Assembly (NCBI GenBank): GCA_904063045.1
Contig: CAJFCJ010000009.1
Coordinates: forward strand, 1,096,942-1,160,941
Length of the DNA: 64,000 bases
Reading direction: 5' to 3'
From: Dimorphilus gyrociliatus
Lineage: Eukaryota; Animalia; Annelida
Notes under the pieces: model-generated
The model's database searches: none
The model's input: only the letters and a program-made list of their open reading frames with translations
Told to the model about the DNA's origin: nothing
Position numbers and translations under genes: made by a program
Shown here: piece by piece, positions 1 through 36,700 of the stretch
How the letters are laid out: each line of letters starts with the position of its first letter
Position numbering within the stretch: position 1 is the first letter of the stretch

Positions 1-3000
1 TCTTCAGGAATTTCCCGATGTTAACGATTACAAGTTGGAGAAATTGTTTGTCATGAGTCTTCTTTGGAGTTTCGGAGCTCTTTTAGAAAAAGATGATCGT
101 ACAAAATTGGTTCAATATTTAAGAAATCATCCTTCAGGATTTTGTATTCCTTGTGGTGACCCATTCGAATGGATGGTTTCAAAGTCTGGAAACTGGGAGC
201 ACTGGGAGACCAGGGTGCCTGAGTATCATTTTCCAACAGATTATATGCCTAATTTTTCATCTATTCTTGTTCCTAATGTTGACAACACTAGAATGGCCTA
301 TATAATAGACACAATATGTAAGCAGGGTAAAGCTGTATTACTCATTGGAGAGCAGGGTACCGCAAAGACAGTTATGGTAAAAAAGCATTTAAAGACATAC
401 AATCCTGATAAACATCTAACAAAGATTTACAATTTCTCCTCCGAAACTAAACCAATTACATTTCAAAAAACAATTGAAAGTTATCTAGACAAGAGAGTTG
501 GTTCTACCTATGGTCCACCAAATGGTAGAAAAATGACAATCTTTATAGATGATATAAATATGCCGGAAATTAATGAATGGGGCGATCAAGTTACTAACGA
601 AATAACAAGACAATTGATTGAAACAAACGGATTTTATAGTCTAAATAAGCCAGGAGATTTTAATACGCTTGTAGATTTGCAATTTATTGGCGCAATGATA
701 CATCCAGGCGGAGGTCGAAATGATATTCCTCAGAGATTAAAAAGACACTTTTCTATATTTAATTGTACTCTACCCGCCGATAAATCTATTGATAGGATTT
801 TTTCCACTATTGGCCTCGGATATTTTTCCGAAAAGAGGTCTTTCCCTCAAAGAATCATTGATCTCATACCAAAGCTAGTTGAAGCAACTAGGTGATACAA
901 CTCGACAATAAGCAAAAATTTTCGTTTGTTTTTATAACTTTCAAAGTTCCCCTTATATTCGAGTTTTATCATCTAACTTATAATCTTAATATTCAGATTA
1001 ATATGGCAAAATACTAAATCAAAAATGTTACCAACGCCAACCAATTTCCATTATGTGTTTAACTTGAGAGATTTATCGAGAGTATGGGAAGGAATGCTTA
1101 AAGCTAATTCCAATGAAATTACCGAGGAATACATGCTTCTTTCTCTTTGGAAATGCGAAGTCAGCAGAGTTTTATCGGATCGTTTTGTATCAGAATCTCA
1201 TATGAAATGGTTTAATACATGTCTTACTAAGGTGGCCACAAACTTATTAGGAGATAGACTCTTGGAGCAAATACCCAATGAGCCATATTTCGTCAATTTT
1301 ATGAGAGATCCTCCAGAGTGTGAAGATGACTTTGATGAATTTGAAGCGCAATTTTCAAGACCATACGAATTAGTTAATTCGTGGCAAGAATTGACAGAAA
1401 GGATAAAAATGTTTATGTCTAATATGAATGAACAAATAAGAGGAGCTAACATGAATTTAGTCCTATTTAGGGATGCTGTTATCCACATAATAAAAATAAC
1501 TAGGATATTTGGTTTTGAAAATGGAAACATGTTGCTTGTTGGAGTTGGTGGCTCTGGAAAACAGTCGTTAACAAGATTAGCCTCTTTTATACAAGGATTA
1601 AAAACATTTAGAATTACCCTGACAAGAGCTTATAACATAACTAACTTCATAGAAGATTTAAAAACTCTTCATAAACTCTCAGGGAAAGATGGTAAGGGGG
1701 TGGCATTTATATTTACCGATAACGATATTAAGGAGGAATCGTTTCTTGAATTGTTAAATAATTTACTTAGTTCTGGTGAAGTATCAAATTTGTTCCAGAA
1801 GGATGAACTTGAAGAAATTACCCAAGATCTTATACCTGTAATGAAAAGAGAATTTCCAAAAAAATTGATAACTTTCGAGAATCTTTATGATTTCTTTATA
1901 TCAAGATGTAGAAAGAATCTTCATGTTATTCTTTGTTTTAGTCCGGTCGGCGAAAAATTTCGATCCAGATCACTGAAATTTCCTGGTCTTATTTCTGGCT
2001 GTACACTTAACTGGTTTCAGGAATGGCCGAAGGATGCTCTCATAGCTGTTGGCTCTCAAATTTTATCCGATTTAGAAGTTTTGGGAGATGATAAATTGAA
2101 AGATGGTCTTGTTGATGTTATCGGAACAATACATGATAGAGTGTCCTCGTCTTGCTACGAATACTTCAAAAGATTTCGTCGAAGAACCTTTACAACTCCT
2201 AAAACTTACTTGACTTTCGTAAACATGTATAAACAATATTATACAAAAAAAATGTCAGATGTTAATGATACCCAAAAAAGGATCCTAACTGGTTTAGAAA
2301 AGTTGGCCGAAGCTTCTCAGAGCGTCGACATGTTAAACAAAGAATTGGCGGAAAAGGAGATATATTTAAGAAAAGCAACAGAAATGGCAGACGACGTTCT
2401 AACTCGTGTAACGATAAACAAAAAAGAGGCGGAAATTGCCAAAACTGAAGTAATGAAATTGAAGATCAAAGCCGCGTCAATTGTAGACGAAATAAGTATT
2501 GAGAAAGCTGCCGCTGAAAGTAAATTAGAAGCGGCTAAACCAGCTTTAGAAGAAGCGGAGAATGCCTTAAAAACAATAAAAGCGCAAGATATACAAGTTG
2601 TTAAAAAATTGGGTAAACCACCTCATTTGATTATGAGAATTATGGATTGTGTTTTAATACTTTTAAGAAGGAAATTGGATAAAGTTACGTTTGATCAAGA
2701 AAGATCATGCATAAAACCATCATGGAACGAATCATTAAAAGCAATGAGTCAGTCGTCGTTTTTAAATGATTTAAAGAATTTTCCAAAGGATACAATTAAT
2801 GGGGAAATGGTTGAACTACTTTTACCTTATTTAGAAGCGGACGACTATAATATTGAGGTGGCTAGACGAATGTGCGGAGATGTTGCTGGACTTTGTTCAT
2901 GGACTAGAGCAATGAGAAATTTCTATGAAGTAAATAAGGAAGTTATACCGCTTAAGCTTAATTTAGCTGTTCAAGAAGGAAGATTTATTACGGCAAAACG

Positions 3001-6000
3001 GGAAGAAGATGCTGCTCAAGTATTACTTGACAGTAAGGAAAATGAATTAGCTGAAGTGCAGAAGATGTATAATGAAGCTGAAATGGAAAAGCGTCGTTTA
3101 ATGGACGATGCCAAAATGTGTCAGGAAAAGATAGACATGTCAAATGAGTTAATAAACGCCCTTTCTGGAGAAAAACTTCGTTGGACTGAACAAAGTAGAC
3201 ATTTTAACGCTCAAAAGCGAAATATAATAGGCGATTGCGTAATATGCATTGCTTTCATTAACTACTGCGGACCATTCAATCAAGAATATAGAAATATCTT
3301 ACTTACGTCATGGAGGGAGCAATTACAAAAGGCTAAAATACCATTTACGATTGACATCGATCTAATTAGTACTTTGGCCGATTTGGCAACGATAGGCGAA
3401 TGGAATTTACAAGGTCTACCGAATGATGAATTATCTCTTCAGGGACTTGATCGTGATTTAATACCTTTAAATTAACAGTAATTAAGTATCCAATTAGGCT
3501 CAATTAACACGATCACGTCTTTTAAAATATAGAATGGTATTATATGCTCATCTTCAGGAAGATATCCCCTCCTTATTGATCCACAAATGCAAGGAAAATT
3601 ATGGCTAAAAAATAAAGGAGCTATAAACGGTCTTCAAATAACTCATTTATCACACAGGTATTTTAGAAATCATCTTGAAGATTGTTTATCAATGGGGAGA
3701 CCTTTATTGATAGAGGATGTAGGAGAAGAATTAGATCCTATTCTTGATAATATTCTAGATAACAATATTATAAGGATAGGAAGAAACTTTAAAATATGCT
3801 TGGGAGATAAGGAAGTTGATTTCGATCCAAATTTTCGATTATACATTACAACTAAATTACCCAATCCAGTGTTTAGTCCAGAAATTTCTGCCTCAACCAC
3901 AACAATCGATTTTACAGTTACAATGACTGGATTGGAAGATCAACTCCTAGGTAGAGTTATACAACAGGAGAGAGCCGAACTAGAAAAAGAGAAAATTGCT
4001 CTTGTACAAGAAATTTCAAATAACAATAGGAGAATAAAGGAATTAGAATCTGATTTATTAGAAAAATTAACTGATAGTACTGGCTGTTTAATTGAGAATC
4101 GAGAGTTAATAGAAGTTTTAAACGTAACTAAGAAAATGGCGGGAGAAATTGAACAAAAATTAAAAGTTGCTGCAGAGACCACCATTAAGATAAACTCTGC
4201 AAGAAATGAATATAAATTAGTTGCAACTAGAGGTTCAATACTTTACTTTCTTATTTGCGATATGTCAATGTTAAATCCTATGTATCAAACATCGTTGAGA
4301 CAATTTCTTAAAATATTTGATAATTCTTTAATGAAGAGTGAAAGATCATTGGTCCAAGGGAAAAGAATTAGGTCTATAATTAATACATTAACCCAACAAG
4401 TGTATCATTTTGTTGTAACTGGATTATATGAGAAGCATAGATTTTTATTTACTTTGCTTATTACTTTAAAAATTGATTTGGGCAGAAATTATGTCAAAAG
4501 GAATGAATTTGAGATCCTAATTAAAGGAGGTGCTAATTTGGATATCAAATCTACTGAACCTAAAATAGCTAAATGGATTAGTGATCATGCTTGGTTGAAT
4601 TTAGTATCTTTGAGTAGTTTAAATACTTTTAATGATATAATTAAACATATAAAGCTAAATGAAAAAGCTTGGAAATTATGGTTTGAAAAAGATGAACCGG
4701 AGGAAGAGGAAATACCAAAAAGTTATGGAAAAGCCTTAGATTCTTTTCGCAGGTTGCTATTGATTAGGTCCTGGTGTCCTGATAGGACCATATCTCAAGC
4801 TAGAAAATATGTTGCCGATTCTCTTGGTGATATATATACTCAGCCGGTGTTACTCGATTTGGAGAGAATCTACCAGGATAGCGATCCAAAATCTCCTATG
4901 CTATGCCTATTGTCTATGGGATCAGATCCTACTGCATTAATAGAAATCTTAGCTAAATCTAAGCAAACTGAAGTTAGAACTATATCTATGGGCCAAGGTC
5001 AAGAGATATATGCAATTAAATTTTTAAAACAATTTATGATAGACGGTGGCTGGATTTTATTACAAAATTGCCATTTAAGCTTAAGTTTCATGATTGAATT
5101 GGTAGACAGATTGTTAGAAAATGAGCACATTCATCCATCTTTTAGATTATGGATGACAAGTGAAGTACACGAAAAGTTTCCTATTACACTTTTACAAATT
5201 TCTACTAGATTTACTAATGAACCACCTGAGGGAATTAGGGCTGGTCTGAAGAGAACGTATGGAAGTATTACTCAAGAAGTACTAGATATGTCGAATATGA
5301 TGCAATGGAAGCCTCTTCTCTATGCAATTTCTTTCCTTCATTCGGTTATTCAAGAAAGACGGACGTTTGGCTATCTGGGATGGAATATTCCTTATGATTT
5401 CAACCAATCAGACTGGAATGCTTGTATTCAATTTATTCAAAATCATTTGGATGATGCATATAAAATTGGTATTTCTTGGACAACAATCCGCTATATGATT
5501 AGTGAGGTTCATTATGGAGGAAGAGTGACCGATGACTACGATAAAAATCTCCTTAAAACCCTAATAAAAGTATGGTTTTCTGATGATATTTTCCATGATG
5601 ATTTTACATTTTCTCAAGGCTATAGCCTACCATTTTGTACTACTTCAGCAGAGTATTTAACATTTATTGACTCTCTTCCAAAAGTTGATCATCCTACAGC
5701 ATTTGGACTTCACTCAAATGCTGATATAACAAAACAATCCAATTTTGCTAAAGATGTCCTCGATGGAATTTTATCAATTCAACCAAAAGAATCGGTTGGT
5801 GGGGAAGATGTAGGAGAAACTAGAGAAACTGTTGTCTATCGTTTAGCGGAAGATATCCTAACAAAATTACCTATAGATTATGATTTTCAAGATATCAAAC
5901 AGAAATTAAATAGAATGGGAAACATTCAACCATTAAATATTTTCTTAAAACAAGAGATTGATAGACTTTATAAAGTTATCTCAACTATGAGAATAACATT

Positions 6001-6646
6001 AACAAATTTAAAACTAGCAATTGAGGGAACGATAATCATGTCTGATCAATTAAAAGATGCTTTTAATAGTATTTACGATGCTAAAATTCCATTACAATGG
6101 ATTAGAATATCTTGGGAATCTTCCACTCTCGGATTTTGGTTTAGTGAACTCTTAGACAGGCATGAACATTTAACATCCTGGCTTAAGTCGGGTAGACCTA
6201 ACTCATTTTGGTTGGCGGGTTTCTTCAATCCACAAGGATTTTTAACTGCTATGAGACAAGAAGTTACTAGAAGTCATAAAGGATGGTCGCTAGATTCTGT
6301 TGTCCTATCAAATGATGTAACAAAACTCCTAAAGGAAGACGTTATTCAAGGTCCTTTGGAGGGCGTTTATATATACGGCTTGTATTTAGAAGGTGCCGGG
6401 TGGGATCGAAAGAATTCAAGATTAACTGAAGCTGTCAATAAAATTCTATTCTCTCCTCTGCCAATCATACACGTCTACGCTATCCAGAAAGATAAATTCC
6501 ATTGTTCGACAGCATATTCCTGCCCTGTTTATAAGAGATCCATCAGAAATAGTGAGAATTATGTGGCTAACATGAATTTGAGAACTACTCAATCGTGTGA
6601 TCATTGGATAATGAGAGGTGTTGCCATACTGTGCGACATTAAATAG
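1..6646 (+). CDS. DNAH5: Axonemal outer-arm dynein heavy chain, DNAH5/DNAH8 type, 5'-truncated by window edge; exons <1-891, 997-3442, 3533-6646
   Basis: AAA3 [12 protein letters not shown] and [19 protein letters not shown]4 [13 protein letters not shown], stalk, RYPLLIDPQ (AAA5), LQNCHL (AAA6), C-terminal GVAILCDIK. Splicing restores EATR|[14 protein letters not shown] and LSLQ|[16 protein letters not shown]5 versus DNAH8 cannot be separated by eye. Confidence 0.93.
892..996 (+). other. 105-nt GT-AG intron with a 21-nt imperfect inverted repeat starting at the donor
   Basis: 892-912 GTGATACAACTCGACAATAAG versus 952-972 CTTATATTCGAGTTTTATCAT (17/21 Watson-Crick plus one G-U); CTAAC branch-like motif at 973-977. 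Confidence 0.85.
3443..3532 (+). other. 90-nt non-canonical GG-AG intron with internal inverted repeat
   Basis: CAG|GGACTT...ATATAG|AAT is the only junction giving the DNAH5-type Q-NGII-x5-RYPLLIDPQ spacing; in-frame stops at 3473-3475 and 3530-3532. Confidence 0.72.
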
Positions 6647-7326
6647 TTATTCAAGACAGTATAAGTTGATATTTGCTATTTAAATCATTTTGATAAAGAA
6701 ACACTTGAATAAATCAATTTTGTGTATTTTTAATAGTTTATATTTATCCATATTTCCATCATTCATATTTCATAATTGTATGTAAACATAACATCTTACA
6801 TTTAGCATGAATCATCTTCCTATCCTGTGTCTTTCTTTTTGTTTAACAGGATAAATTAGATTAGGCCTTGTAAATTATACAGTATTAATTATTATAACTT
6901 GTCAATTATCAATCAATAAGCTAAATAAGAATCGTAATTTTCATAAATAAAATAAACAAATAAGAAAAAGAGAAGAGTTAGTATAGATTCTTTAATCCCA
7001 TATTTAGGATTGTAAGTTAATCTTTGAATTATATAAACTATATATTGCCATTTTTTTTTAAATTTACAACAATATATCAACAAAAGATTTCATATTAATT
7101 TCAAAAAATGAAGTAATAACATCAATATTTAAATTCTATTCCTTCCTTTAGTTTTTCTTTTAGACGCTCTTCTATTTAAACGCTCAAGTATAATTATCAC
7201 CACATACTTCTCTAACACATTTTCGTTTTCTTCTTCACTTTTTCCTCATTTGTTTCGTGACTTATTTTTTCTGGATATTCTTCTTTGCCTATAATTCTAT
7301 TCGATTAGTTGCAATCTTCTTACGTA

Positions 7327-8305
7327 ATGAGAGGAAAAAAGTTTGTATATTATACAAGTGAAATTACTATGAAATACTCTACAAGTACAACAACTACAAA
7401 ATCGAATTTTGAATTAAATAAAAAAAGAGAAGTTGTAAAAAAGTGGTCTAATTTAAAAGAAGCTGAAAGTGAAGATAGTATGGCTAATATAGTTGTTATA
7501 GTATTATCAATATTTGGCGTATTTAGCTTTATAAGGTGTACTTACAAAGCTAATAGAACTAATTAACTAAGGATCTAAATAGATATTTTAGCTTTGTAAA
7601 TTCACTTTTATTTAAAGTTGTCTGGCTTTCTTCGCTTATAAAATGGGATGGTTCAATAATTTCTTAAGTAATACTGTTGGCGATGAAAAAAGTACTCCTA
7701 AACGACCTTCTCAACAGCAACAATCAACTCCACCTAACCAAGCTCAACCAATGAATGATCATAAACCGAGAATGTCTATTAGTAAATATGGTATTATACT
7801 AGATGAAACTGAAAAACACGAAGCGGCTACGAAACCTATTTTAAAAAAAGAATCAACTGTAGCATCCCAGGGTCGACGTAGTAACATTGACGATGATAAT
7901 AATGTACTTGCGCAAAGCGTTATGAACATTGCAAATTTATTACAAAGTCAAATGAATATGAGTAGTTTAGGGAGACAATCGCTTATGGGTATGCCTTTAC
8001 CATGTAATTTCCCCAGTCAACTCAGTCAATTTGATATGAACTCGATGAATCAGCAACAATTACTCCCTTTACAATTTTTACTTGGTCAACAACCTCAGTT
8101 TCCTCAGCAAATAACAAAAGAAAATAAATCGTTCGATAACCTTCTAGCTACAATGGGTATGGGAGGGAATACAAGTGATACACAAGACGAAGAAGACGTT
8201 TCACAAGGTGGTCGTGTCTATAAGGGCACAAGAAGAGGAGGAAAATTAAAAGTAGCTGATAAACCGAGAGTAGCAACTTACTTAAGGGAGGAAAGGGAAA
8301 GTTAG
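7327..8305 (+). CDS. Orphan single-pass membrane protein, about 298 aa; exons 7327-7535 and 7618-8305 (start uncertain)
   Basis: Phase-2 intron AG|GTGTAC...TTAAAG|T joins ORFs 7309-7566 and 7643-8305 into one hydrophobic helix IVVIVLSIFGVFSFISCLAFFAY, followed by a Q/P/M-rich tail. No family recognised. Confidence 0.7.
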
Positions 8306-18778: not shown

Positions 18779-20686
18779 ATGAAGTATATATTTTTTCTGC
18801 TTCAATTACAAATGGTTTTTTCGAAGAAGCCGAATATCATTGTAATGTTTATGGACGATATGGGTTGGGGAGATTTAGGAATATATGGAAATCCTGCAAG
18901 TGAAACTCCTAACTTGGATAGATTAGCTGAAGAGGGCATTAAATTTACTGATATGTATACGGGTAGCTCCATCTGCTCGCCATCAAGGGCATCATTGTTG
19001 AGCGGAAGATTACCAATAAGAAATGGTTTTTATTCAGATGGTCAATTTGCAAGAGCATCTTACGCTCCTCAAGTTGTGTTGGGTGGTATTTCCGATTCAG
19101 AAGTTTTACTTCCAGAAATTCTTAAAGGAATTTATATAAAATTATATTAATAATTTATCTCAAATCAAATTCTTATCTAAATTCTATTCAAATTCCTTTA
19201 AGAAAATGGATATCAAAATAAAATTGTTGGAAAATGGCATCTAGGTCACAGGGAAAGATATTTACCATTAAATCATGGTTTTCACGAATGGTTCGGGGCA
19301 CCCAACTGCCATTATAAATATGATACAACAGTACAACCAAATATTCCAGTATACAAGAATAGAGAAATGACTGGAAGATATTATCAAGATTACAAAATTG
19401 ATCATAAAACTGGCTTAGGCAATCTCACTCAGTTATATACACAGGAAGCATTAGAATTTATTGAAAGAAAGACTAAGCAAAACGAGAATTTTTTCCTCTA
19501 TTGGGCGCCCGACGCAACTCATACGCCACTCTATGCATCTAAAGAATTCAGAGGTCACTTTATATTTATTAAAAAAAGTTTATTAATTATGCAAAAGTCC
19601 TATTATAGCACGAAAGAGAGAATTGTTTACTTAGGGAAATTGTAAAAATTCTTTTATGGGATATAAAAGTTGGGTCATTTAAGAATACTTCTTTATATAT
19701 GAGTTTGAATTTCTTAAGATTTACATTTCTTTTTAAAAAAAAATATCCATAATTCTCTTTTTAAAGTTGAGAGGAAAACTAGACGATGTAAATAGAACAA
19801 TAAAGATCGTAAACGATTTTCGATAGTTACTGTGAGTATATAGAATTTTTTTGTAGGAAAGTCGAAACGCGGTCTTTATGGAGACGCTATTATGGAAATA
19901 GACGCTGGCGTTGGAAAGATAATGGCTCTTCTTAAGAAACTCGATATCGATAAAAATACTTTCGTTTTTTTTTCTTCCGATAATGGAGCGGCAACATACG
20001 CGTTCACAAATGGCGGGTCCAATGGACCTTTTCTTTGCGGAAAGCAAACAACTTTCGAAGGGGGTTATAGGCAACCGGCATTGGCAAGATTTCCCGGAAA
20101 GATCCCTGCTGGCCAGATAACTAATCAAGTATCTTTGCTTATGGATCTTTTACCAACGATTTTAGATTTTGCCGATATTAAAATGCCAAGAAATCTAACT
20201 TTAGACGGTCAATCAATAAGAAATGTGATGGAAGGAACGTCAAAGGTATATGACAGGGGCGTTTTTTATTATAGGGGAAACGCTTTGTTTAAATCTAGAT
20301 ATGGGTTCTATAAAGCTCACTTTTATACGTGGAACACTCCTGCTGAAGCAATTAAAATTGGCTATCATTATTGCCCAGGTCAACGGATTGAGAATGTCAC
20401 AACCTCTCAGATGACTAACTATACAGACAAACCATTATTGTTTCACCTAGGAAGAGATCCAGGCGAGAAATTTCCAATAGATCCTACCACCGAAGAATAT
20501 CGTATTGGCCTAGCACCAATTTTAAAAATTGTTCAACAGCATAAAGATAAATTGATAAAAGCAAAGCCAGAATTCAATCTCTGTGATTTAGCAATTCAGA
20601 ATTGGGCTCCTAGAGGCTGCGAAAAAATTAACAGATGTATGAAAGCACCGCCATCATACGTTTACAAATGTTTTTGGCCATATTGA
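18779..20686 (+). CDS. GALNS: N-acetylgalactosamine-6-sulfatase, about 509 aa; exons 18779-19127, 19203-19553, 19857-20686
   Basis: Signal peptide, [17 protein letters not shown], formylglycine motif [33 protein letters not shown]-terminal [11 protein letters not shown]. Confidence 0.93.
19128..19202 (+). other. 75-nt non-canonical GA-AG intron
   Basis: AAAG|GAATTT...TTTAAG|AA gives [22 protein letters not shown]; the interval contains no GT or GC and has an in-frame TAA at 19148-19150. Confidence 0.78.
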
Positions 20687-33700: not shown

Positions 33701-36700
33701 CGTTTGACATAAAGCCAGCAACTTATGTTGTAATTGGTCTTGGTAGATTACAATTTCACAACGTAACAGCTGGAATATTTCGAAATGAAAGTCAGTCAGA
33801 TATTAATGAAGATGATGATGAAGGTATAAATAACCAGTTGTTGTCATCAATTATAATGCTATTATTATTATTCTTACAGAAGATTTTTTCGTTACGCCAT
33901 CATCTACACCACCTACAGAAAGCATGCCTCCTCAATCATTATCCGATTTAAGGGCTGACTCAGATTTATCACATCAAGCTCTACAAGAAAAAATTTACGA
34001 AAAATACATACTTAACCTATCGGATGCCCACGTTATGATTGGTACCAGTAATGATAATTGGAAAAATGCATTAAATAAAAATTCTAGTATACTACATTGT
34101 ATTGATAGATTTTCCATTAGTTTACAAATTGAAAGGTAACGAACTTTTACATTTTTGAAATATTCATTAATTATACTTGCACTATTTCAGGCGGCTAATT
34201 CATTCAGATGATCCCGAATGGCCAAAATTAACACTTTCAGGGAATGTTCCAGCATTACAGCTACATGTTAGCGAATCTAAAATAAAGGCATTACAATTCT
34301 GCTTCAAACTATTTGCAAGTAATCCAGAAATTAATCTTAAACGAAAAACACCCAATGAGATTACAAGAAGCGTTTCCAAAGAGACAGCTATGTATCAAAG
34401 TGTATATAGCTTGTATAGTAAAAGCGTATTAAAGTTAGTAAGAAATAATAGTAAAAATATAGTTTTAAAATGGTTTCTGACAGTGTCTCTAGCTATTCGT
34501 CCTCTAATGAAGATGAAAAGAAAAAAATTGCCGAATCGAAACTGTTTCTTATGCAATTTACGGTTAATAAGATGTCTTTAGAAGTTCAGAGTCAAGGTTT
34601 TTACTTTTTATTTCTCCTCATTTCCCTTTTTAATTGTTATTGAGATTTGCCAAAGATTTGCAAAAGCTCTATAATATTTTGGGATAAAGCATAGTGATTA
34701 TACGAGGCCGAATTATTATTTAAAGAAAAGTCTATCGGTGCGATTTCTAATCCAAAATCAAATTTTCTTTAGGTAGACCGATTGCTGAATTACAAATATC
34801 TGGTGTCAGAGCTAACTTTACTAAACGTCCATATGATTTGTCAACTTGTTTGACAGTACATAGTCTACTTGTGGCAGATGCAATGCAAACTTATGGACCT
34901 GATTTTGAGCTATTAGTTGCCTCTCATCGAAATTTATGGTTTGTAATGCCTTATACAGCACATTATAATATAAATTAGTCTTCTTTTCATTTAGTCTGGA
35001 TAGTAGATCTGGAAGTATACGAGATTCTGATCCTAACTCTCCCATACTAAAATCACCTGCTAGTCCTAGTTCACCAGGAGAAATAGACCTACCACCAAAA
35101 CAGAGATCCAGTTTCACAAGTATTCATCATATGTTTATGAACGCCCTGCAGAATGTTACAGGTAGCTATATTACGACTATAGTAATCATCACTGTGTTAA
35201 TGTACTTTTAAATGACACTTAGGATCTAAAAATTATGAATCATCGATGAGAACAGCGTCACCTCCTATAATTGATAGTGAAGCTTTGATAAGTGTCGAAA
35301 TCGAAGTTATCGAAAGGAAAGATGAAGAAAGTGATCCAATGATAATTGGAAATCTTCAATTTCATAGTTTAGATTTTATTTGTAAGTTTATATATTTTAT
35401 CAACTTAAAGTCATTTAAAATATCTTCATTCTATAATTCAAAACAGTCAATCAAGAAACCCTTATCGAATTACTTAGTTTCTATAAAACTGTTCTTCCAT
35501 CTACAAAATCTCTGCAGAAACCTTCATCAACTGCAGTTGACCGTGTTGCTAAAACTTCCGGCTATTCAATTGAGCTAACAGCAGATCTCAGACGTTTAAA
35601 CTTATTGTTAATGAGAACGCAACCTATTGGACAAATGGTTCGTGGAGTTAAAGTTGCAACTGTGGCTGTAACCGGTGGTAGGGTTGGAACAACAGTAACA
35701 GGAGGATCTGTAGAATTAAAAGGATCATTGGATGGAATGGAAATCGTAAGTGTTCTAGACGAAAATAAACAAACAGTATTTTGTGTTGGGGGCAAAGAAG
35801 AAGTTGTATTAGAAGAGAGTGAAAAAGCTTGCGATTTCGAATTTTATAAGGATGATTCTGAATTTTCTGCCCCAAAGGTCAAAGTCCACATGGCATCTCT
35901 ATGCTACTTTCACAATCCAATAGTCCTGCAACAAGTTTCTTTCTGCTTAGATCAATTCCAAGAACAAGTTAGAACATTAGCTGCACAGATTAAAAGTCAT
36001 GCAAAAGATTACGCTATGAGTATTGTAAAGCCTAAATCGACAAATATGACGTTCGACGCAATTTTTGAAACACCATATATAGTCTTACCTAAGTCAGCAA
36101 ATAGTAGTAGTGTTCTTATTGCTCAATTAGGAACAATAGATATGAAACATGATACACCTTTAGCAAATTCAACAATGATTGATGAAGGTTTGTTAGATAT
36201 CGTTATAAATGTACTATGTAGCTATCTTACTAATTATCTGTTTATCCATAATTTTAAAGGATTAGAAAAGTCAAATCTATTTTCTGTTGATATGAGAGAA
36301 GTTAAGATGTTTGCTGTTGATGGCTGTGATAGATTGTTGAATATTGGAGTGGAACAATTAATAGAGTATTGTCGTCGAGGATCAAAAATTTTACACGAGG
36401 CTAACTTGCTGTTCAATGTTGATAGACAAAATTTATCGACAGATATAGAACTCGAAGAAAGGCAAGAAATTGCAATAAGCGGGAAAATTATTACACCTAT
36501 AAAAATGACTTTAAGAAAGGATTCTTTTGAACAAATTTTAGCTACATTAAATAATTTAACACCTGAAAGCAATGAATTCAGTGGTAACTATTGTCTTTAA
36601 TATATTTATTTTGCTGCAGTAAAATTATAACATAAACCATATCCTTCCATTATTCTTTTAGATTCTTCTGCAGAGTTTGATACTATGAGTCTTGAAAGCT

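Follow-up and report, generated by a model that had tools for sequence, protein, structure and literature searches.

The window analysed here, 64,000 nucleotides (nt) of the annelid Dimorphilus gyrociliatus (contig CAJFCJ010000009.1, positions 1,096,942 to 1,160,941), opens within a forward-strand gene for an axonemal dynein heavy chain, which homology assigns to the DNAH5 type (outer arm, gamma type). The exons of this gene are interrupted by a canonical intron (intron 1) and, at positions 3443-3532, by a 90-nt segment that begins with GG and ends with AG (intron 2, here called the GG intron). An initial annotation, made from the letters alone, had proposed that this segment is an intron whose donor is buried in a hairpin. 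The analyses described below establish its removal from the messenger RNA, place it in a small class of introns whose ends are joined by a helix, and weigh the part that such a helix may have in splicing.

The position of the intron follows from protein homology. For the exon that ends at 3442 (...TCT CTT CAG), the alignment to human DNAH5 runs through residue 3589 (...LSIQ), and the exon that starts at 3533 (AAT GGT ATT) resumes at residue 3590 (NGII...), with nothing missing; the intervening DNA reads ggacttga...aaatatag. The join is equally seamless against two other solved dyneins, the 9fqr chain and the Chlamydomonas gamma chain, and it is the best-scoring junction in a global alignment to the dynein paralogs of the genome. 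A join of this quality across 3442/3533 implies that exactly 90 nt must be removed.

Four public sequencing runs, available as assembled contigs, were aligned over positions 700-6600. X1 is a genomic run of depth 268, possibly from the source sample of the assembly itself, the contig of which was assembled independently; X2 is the transcriptome of a 2017 study; X3 and X4 are runs of a 2020 study, and can be taken as RNA-derived from their contig totals of 35-42 Mb, their patchy coverage rising toward the 3' end, and their spliced contigs. Contigs of X3 and X4 each skip exactly 90 nt (3441-3530, with an ambiguity of 2), which corresponds to 3443-3532 when written as GG..AG, and the X3 contig is also without intron 1. 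In X2, a 6.1-kb contig from which intron 1 has been spliced out retains the GG intron and shows zero differences from the window; retention adds 10 codons to the reading frame and then a stop. The X1 contig, too, matches the window with zero differences, so that the GG is present in DNA. Both the coordinates and the letters of the proposed intron were thus correct, and the suspicion that a T-to-G assembly error at 3444 had created the donor is answered by the genomic contig of X1 and the intron-retaining RNA contig of X2, which both read GG.

The skipped contigs could in principle reflect an artefact, either an assembly error at a true GT or template switching by reverse transcriptase across the hairpin. 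Hairpins and short direct repeats, such as the AG/AG at the two borders, are classic settings for template switching, a possibility raised in PMC7072748. The repeat is only 2 nt long, however, the identical junction was obtained in two runs, and the GG is read both in the depth-268 genomic contig and in an RNA contig of another study. The deletion also restores a conserved protein join, failing which a 4,600-residue motor would be truncated. A search of the genome for an intronless copy able to mimic splicing returned only paralogs at 57-66% identity. An artefact is largely refuted by these data and retains hardly any probability.

That 3443-3532 is a genuine intron, precisely removed from mRNA although its donor is not GT, is therefore confirmed. 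The AG at 3441-3442 is repeated at 3531-3532, and three registers consequently yield the same mRNA, namely GG..AG (3443-3532), GG..TA (3442-3531), and AG..AT (3441-3530). Since cDNA cannot fix the register, GG..AG was chosen as the only one with a terminal AG, and it is most plausibly the one in use. The only all-canonical alternative, GT3453 joined to AG3557, would put GLDR in place of NGIICSSSG, as the initial annotation had pointed out; this joint occurs in no contig of the four runs, although contigs drop rare forms. Joining GT3453 to the true acceptor would cause a 10-nt frame shift. Splicing of the GG intron is not fully efficient, given that one transcriptome (X2) carries the retained form. 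The difference between X2 and the spliced form in X3 and X4 may reflect slow or regulated splicing of this intron.

The intron contains a hairpin that begins one base inside its 5' end. The initial annotation had paired positions 3444-3455 with 3508-3519 and had added an outer AGG/UUU extension, and both elements withstood testing: 11 of the 12 positions of the helix are paired, with one mismatch, and the helix extends outward across the splice junction through A3441-U3522, G3442.U3521, and G3443.U3520. A looser continuation pairs exon positions 3432-3440 with 3523-3531, resulting in 24-nt arms (3432-3455 and 3508-3531) at 75% complementarity. The helix covers the donor as well as the cryptic GT at 3453-3454, which lies inside the 5' arm, as had been predicted. 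A z-score for the minimum free energy (MFE) of the whole region proved too blunt and was replaced by an end-pairing test, in which the best duplex of the intron 5' end with its 3' part was compared with those of 2000 dinucleotide shuffles of the intron. The GG intron scores -19.1 kcal/mol against -7.8 +/- 2.6 for the shuffled sequences, none of which is as good (0/2000; z = -4.4 to -4.8). The stem is real and far beyond chance.

Whether other introns share this property was assessed in two sets. The first comprises 56 introns of the window, predicted from chains of open reading frames (ORFs) together with a simple splice-site score, of which only the two dynein introns and one intron of a sulfatase gene (GALNS) are verified. 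For the second, anchored global alignment to paralogs was used to place 17 introns in three dynein genes of the gamma type, a procedure that recovered both RNA-verified junctions as top hits. Three other approaches were dropped: a junction scorer based on local alignment preferred a wrong junction to the RNA-verified one of intron 1, enumeration of introns by frame alone was far too ambiguous, and a codon-usage filter for exons gave no discrimination.

End-pairing is bimodal. Four introns of the first set are outliers (z from -4.8 to -6.8 within this set, and from -4.4 to -7.8 depending on the run), and the other 52 predicted introns of the window resemble shuffled sequences; among the 17 alignment-placed introns of the gamma-type dyneins, only dynein introns 1 and 2 are clamped in this manner. 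The four clamped introns are dynein intron 1 (GT), dynein intron 2 (GG), the predicted intron 7536-7617 (GT), and the GALNS intron 19128-19202 (GA). They are 75-105 nt long, and unclamped introns mostly 51-70 nt. Dynein intron 1, a canonical and RNA-verified intron (GTGATA...CAG), has a stronger helix than the GG intron (-23.3 kcal/mol; 0/2000 shuffles). This interrupted 21-bp helix pairs 889-897 with 967-975 and includes two further segments; it begins at exon position -3, spans the 5' splice site, and its 3' strand ends in a branch-like CTAAC motif (973-977), 20 nt from the 3' splice site. Such an arrangement sets the 5' splice site beside the likely branch adenosine. The ends of the GALNS intron form a perfect 15-bp inverted repeat that takes in 9 bases of the upstream exon and 2 bases of the downstream exon, and across its junction human GALNS is matched without a gap, with residue 103 at the end of one exon, residue 104 encoded by the split codon, and residue 105 at the start of the next. 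In the predicted intron 7536-7617, positions 7524-7538 pair with 7603-7620 over both splice sites (-20.1 kcal/mol; z = -5.4).

Non-GT donors are found in two of the four clamped introns and in none of the approximately 66 unclamped ones (Fisher p = 0.0025). The suggestion of the initial annotation that the GG donor and the stem belong together is thus borne out in part: non-GT donors are enriched among clamped introns, but the canonical GT of intron 1 is more strongly clamped than the GG. For that reason the stem is to be regarded as a property of the class rather than of the GG donor. Within the sample examined, the clamped introns behave as a discrete minority class in D. gyrociliatus, in which the end of the upstream exon and the 5' splice site itself belong to a helix whose other strand lies in the 3' part of the intron. 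The features are compiled in the following table.

Coordinates of the dynein exons, introns, and helix elements, and of two further clamped introns, in the window
Feature	Positions	Strand	Details
Dynein exon	...2-891	+	
Dynein intron 1	892-996	+	GT..AG, 105 nt; skipped in contigs of X2 and X3
Dynein exon upstream of the GG intron	997-3442	+	ends ...ELSLQ; open frame; RNA contigs reach 3440/3442
GG intron (dynein intron 2)	3443-3532	+	90 nt, phase 0, GG..AG; skipped in X3/X4, retained in X2; single copy
Last dynein exon	3533-6646	+	1037 codons plus stop
5' arm of the stem	3444-3455	+	GACTTGATCGTG; holds cryptic GT 3453-3454
3' arm of the stem	3508-3519	+	CACGATCACGTC; 11/12 positions pair with the 5' arm
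Outer helix extension over the 5' splice junction	3441-3443	+	pairs with 3520-3522 (A-U, G.U, G.U) in the MFE structure
Candidate branch-site-like motif TTAAC	3504-3508	+	25 nt upstream of the 3' splice site; abuts the 3' arm; read from sequence
Exonic AG, acceptor of the all-canonical alternative with GT3453	3556-3557	+	no such joint in contigs
Predicted intron, GT..AG	7536-7617		donor GTGTAC; between ORFs 7309-7563 and 7616-8302
GALNS (sulfatase) intron, GA..AG	19128-19202		arms 19119-19133 / 19190-19204; junction by homology

Other long inverted repeats of the window (33019/33231, 35206/35420, and 43998/44108) do not belong to the clamped introns. One of them is a perfect 11-bp inverted repeat, 35206-35216 and 35410-35420 (TTTTAAATGAC and GTCATTTAAAA), with one arm in each of the two introns on either side of an in-frame exon of 159 nt (about 35223-35381) in a VPS13-like gene. 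It could loop out this exon and lead to skipping or back-splicing.

The hairpins might exist for a purpose unrelated to splice-site choice. In a mirtron-like scheme, the debranched intron would fold into a hairpin resembling a microRNA precursor and give rise to small RNAs. The lengths of 75-105 nt, a short tail on the 3' side, and a hairpin that begins with the first base of the intron are all reminiscent of 3'-tailed mirtrons, and the GALNS and 7536-7617 introns are nearly one whole hairpin each. The solid stem of the GG intron, however, measures only 12 bp and encloses a weak AU-rich interior, compared with the duplex of about 22 bp in mirtrons; the pairing reaches exon bases that a mirtron does not need; and the link to non-GT donors would be left unexplained. 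In addition, an Rfam scan of the hairpin returned no small nucleolar RNA or microRNA family at threshold (the best microRNA family had an E-value of 0.61), and no box C/D-like motifs were seen by eye. A mirtron is accordingly an improbable explanation.

The GG intron is not an ancestral feature of dynein genes. At the site between the Gln and Asn codons, there is no intron in Patella, Solemya, Priapulus, the fish Dissostichus, or Rotaria, most of which share two flanking introns that D. gyrociliatus lacks; nor is there one at this site in any dynein paralog of the genome. Likewise, the site of intron 1 is intronless in the two closest paralogs (G000:C2:2198000-2222999 and G000:C7:2678000-2702999), which have hardly any introns and whose open frames span 1,644-2,096 codons. 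With five outgroup loci and all paralogs lacking the intron, an ancestral origin is rejected, and the GG intron is a gain specific to its lineage and gene. The 5' half of the window gene keeps about a dozen short GT-AG introns.

The comparison with orthologs proposed in the initial annotation also uncovered a relative in which the same site is interrupted. A query with the 1037 amino acids of the last exon, aimed at dinophilid orthologs, returned nothing above 60% identity; a 300-residue query found P0121, a protein encoded on a 1,635-nt Logan contig of run SRR31984834, which shares 82-84% identity with the beginning of the last exon. On this contig one ORF ends at 277 and the next starts at 329 in the same frame, and P0121 reads MQSNFNEFSTKQ before NAIICSSAGRFPLLIDPQ. 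Together with this reading, the break indicates that the site is interrupted in the relative as well, by 93 nt or more, with a CAG acceptor, the same phase, and the same Asn codon; the upstream 91-residue ORF of the relative was searched for and not found. Judged from these sequences, the GG intron would predate the split from this relative of about 83% identity. The last 36 intron bases of the relative, obtained by back-translation, match the GG intron at no more than 19 of 36 positions, against 15.2 +/- 2.7 for random sequence. The intron has therefore diverged almost to saturation and yet 11 of its 12 stem pairs are intact, an indirect sign that the pairing has been maintained. P0121 ends with RKC and a stop after GGAN, where D. 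gyrociliatus reads on (LDIK...), at window position 4537|4538 (...IKGGAN). This end suggests that the relative has an intron at 4537|4538 that is absent here, and hence that introns turn over between close lineages.

Given a lineage-specific gain, the stem could be nothing but a relic of the way in which the intron arose, for instance by a palindromic insertion, one resembling a miniature inverted-repeat transposable element (MITE), or by fold-back repair of a break. The intron would then be a real spliceosomal intron, the stem would have no splicing role, and the spliceosome would be relaxed at position +2. The lineage-specific position agrees with this account, and the GG intron does have one trait of introners and MITEs, namely terminal inverted repeats, with 12-nt arms that are 11/12 complementary and start one base inside the intron. 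Inverted-repeat ends are a hallmark of the transposon-derived introns of Fritillaria, Micromonas, and dinoflagellates (PMC11282704), and the palindromes of the GALNS and 7536-7617 introns run into the flanking exons like a possible signature of insertion or repair. Against a relic stand the single-copy nature of the four clamped introns, each of which matches only itself in the 77.9-Mb assembly at E <= 10 and which have no terminal sequence in common. This result also rejects a family of repeats or introners as their source. No target-site duplication was found at the GG intron beyond the 2-nt AG common to most introns (the flanks, TTCAGG and TTTTAA, differ). The 3' end of the intron is near-random relative to its counterpart and 11 of 12 stem pairs nevertheless survive, which neutral decay would not predict. 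A pure relic is a possible but rather unlikely account of the stem.

The signals of the GG intron were compared with those of the splicing machinery. Its context, CAG|GGACTT...TATAG|A, has an exonic AG, G at +1, A at +3, and a terminal AG, and toward its 3' end a brief run of T (TCTTTT) gives way to A-rich sequence. Together with the candidate branch motif TTAAC, this context makes the intron look spliceosomal, and the chemistry of its removal is presumably that of the spliceosome. The main U1 copies of the genome carry the standard 5' end ATACTTACCTG, with which CAG|GGACTT pairs contiguously only at positions -3 to +1, so that ordinary U1 recognition of the donor must be weak. A variant U1 gene at G000:C3:2401789-2401954 (L040) starts with AAACTTACTTGG instead of ATACTTACCTGG (positions 2 and 9 differ) and scores below the main copies. 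An adapted U1 was rejected as an explanation, since this variant is unchanged at the base that reads intron +2. A U12-type intron was rejected as well; it would need a start of the form RTATCCTT and TCCTTAAC at 10-15 nt from the 3' end, whereas the intron starts with GGACTTGA and TTAAC lies 25 nt off. A GTATCC does occur inside the intron, at 3486, but it does not fit the register of the observed junction.

Weak complementarity to U1 might also point away from the spliceosome altogether, toward a structure-guided removal in which the helix would serve as the recognition element, as proposed for the nonconventional introns of euglenids. The non-canonical border, the paired ends, which euglenid introns also have (PMC11282704), and the near absence of U1 complementarity would all be accounted for. 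The AG|G context at the exon border, TTAAC, and the AG at the intron end nonetheless resemble spliceosomal signals, and the same clamped class includes GT-AG introns. To our knowledge, no such pathway exists in animals. Removal by a non-spliceosomal route is very improbable.

Based on these considerations, the GG intron is probably a lineage-specific intron of the clamped class, the donor choice of which is aided by the helix during splicing by the major spliceosome. In this model, the major spliceosome would remove the intron, donor choice would rest on the exonic AG, the G at +1, and the A at +3, and the helix would have a helping role in that it would keep the 5' splice site close to the branch and the 3' region and mask the competing GT3453.

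Several points weigh against this model. U1 is normally kept from a 5' splice site that lies in a helix, and splicing is usually inhibited; the stem could thus be a hindrance, with which the retention in X2 agrees no less than with a weak donor. For the MFE of the whole region, the z-score is only -1.64, and the interior of the hairpin is weak and AU-rich. The enrichment of non-GT donors reaches only p = 0.035 in the alignment-placed set alone, and the larger test is biased, given that most comparison introns are predicted and the scoring favours GT. The stem is known from D. gyrociliatus DNA alone, with the relative known at this site from the protein P0121. Finally, the RNA support for splicing comes from assembled contigs, in which usage levels and rare cryptic junctions are invisible.

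A bolder version can be put forward tentatively. It is possible that D. gyrociliatus, in a compact genome considered 'conservative', harbours recently gained, single-copy, helix-clamped introns in which the GT rule is suspended (GT, GA, and GG donors), and in which the helix, and not pairing with U1, defines the 5' splice site. Were this the case, U1-bypassing or structure-guided splice-site choice would exist in a bilaterian outside the tunicates, new introns would have a route to become established without consensus signals, and a helix that replaces U1 pairing would bear on how genomes such as those of Fritillaria or Euglena came to tolerate non-GT introns.

Apart from the mechanism, an RNA-supported GG-AG intron in an annelid has practical consequences. 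By default, the annotation programs PASA (Program to Assemble Spliced Alignments) and EVidenceModeler (EVM) accept only consensus splice sites. The pipeline of the D. gyrociliatus genome paper (PMC7854359) relies on both, so that genes such as this dynein are likely to be mis-modelled, in the present case either as a truncated protein or with 4 residues in the place of 9. A clamped class that mixes canonical and non-canonical donors also suggests a testable rule, in which the helix comes first and the identity of the donor is relaxed. More generally, a site at which other phyla and the paralogs have no intron, in a gene without the neighbouring ancestral introns, offers a clean case for studying how a new intron arises and becomes spliceable.

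The closest counterparts in terms of splice sites are the GA-AG introns of Eurytemora and Oikopleura, the donor context of which is AG|G.A (PMC7072748). In both Eurytemora affinis and Oikopleura dioica, the GA-AG and GG-AG introns (Robertson 2017, cited in PMC7072748; Frey and Pucker 2020, PMC7072748) resemble the present ones in having G at +1, a base other than T at +2, an exonic AG, A at +3, and an AG acceptor. They make up several percent of introns in those species (PMC7072748), whereas 2 were found among about 70 introns tested here, and there is no annelid among their reported hosts. All three are compact marine invertebrate genomes. For E. affinis, a U1 variant has been proposed, which has no clear counterpart in Dimorphilus, where the variant U1 keeps the base that reads +2.

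The initial annotation knew of no report that tied such donors to a stem. This stands for Oikopleura and Eurytemora, for which the literature searched yielded no report of end-pairing in GA- or GG-donor introns, nor was one found for any annelid. It does not extend to non-canonical introns at large: Fritillaria borealis, euglenids, and parasitic dinoflagellates such as Amoebophrya are all described as having introns of this kind with paired ends (PMC11282704). Full-text searches returned no paper on such introns in D. gyrociliatus, and a word search of its genome paper (PMC7854359) found no mention of GT-AG or non-canonical splice sites.

Among these systems, the non-canonical introns of F. 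borealis (Henriet et al. 2019, via PMC11282704; PMC13326754) likewise occupy species-specific positions and have non-GT/AG borders and inverted-repeat ends, and they are removed by the major spliceosome (PMC11282704; PMC13326754). They are mostly AG-AC or AG-AT, constitute the majority of introns in their genome, show target-site duplications, and stem from repeated MITE families (PMC11282704). The clamped introns of Dimorphilus, in contrast, are unique sequences without duplication, end in AG, and form a small minority. Euglenid nonconventional introns share variable borders and a stem that joins the intron ends; they belong to protists, however, have no polypyrimidine tract, and leave the RNA as circles by a route that is not known (PMC11282704; PMC12501133). 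Unlike these, the GG intron has a spliceosome-like AG|G context and terminal AG, and its structure is shared with GT-AG introns.

Two further systems help to delimit the class. In the structure-dependent introns of teleosts (Lin et al. 2016, Genome Res, PMC4691745), an end-bridging hairpin similarly replaces part of splice-site recognition, but the stems consist of (AC)n/(GT)n repeats and the sites are canonical (PMC4691745), whereas in Dimorphilus unique sequence pairs through the 5' splice site. Introners (Gozashti et al. 2022, PMC9860276) resemble the clamped introns in their lineage-specific gain in an aquatic organism and in their inverted-repeat ends. Within animals the survey reports them from two groups only, with no annelid turning up when its text was searched by word, and they are defined by many near-identical copies (PMC9860276), in contrast to the single-copy clamped introns. 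What sets the present case apart is the annelid host and the combination of single-copy hairpins, an AG acceptor, a helix that crosses the 5' splice site and enters the exon, and GT, GA, and GG donors within one structural class.

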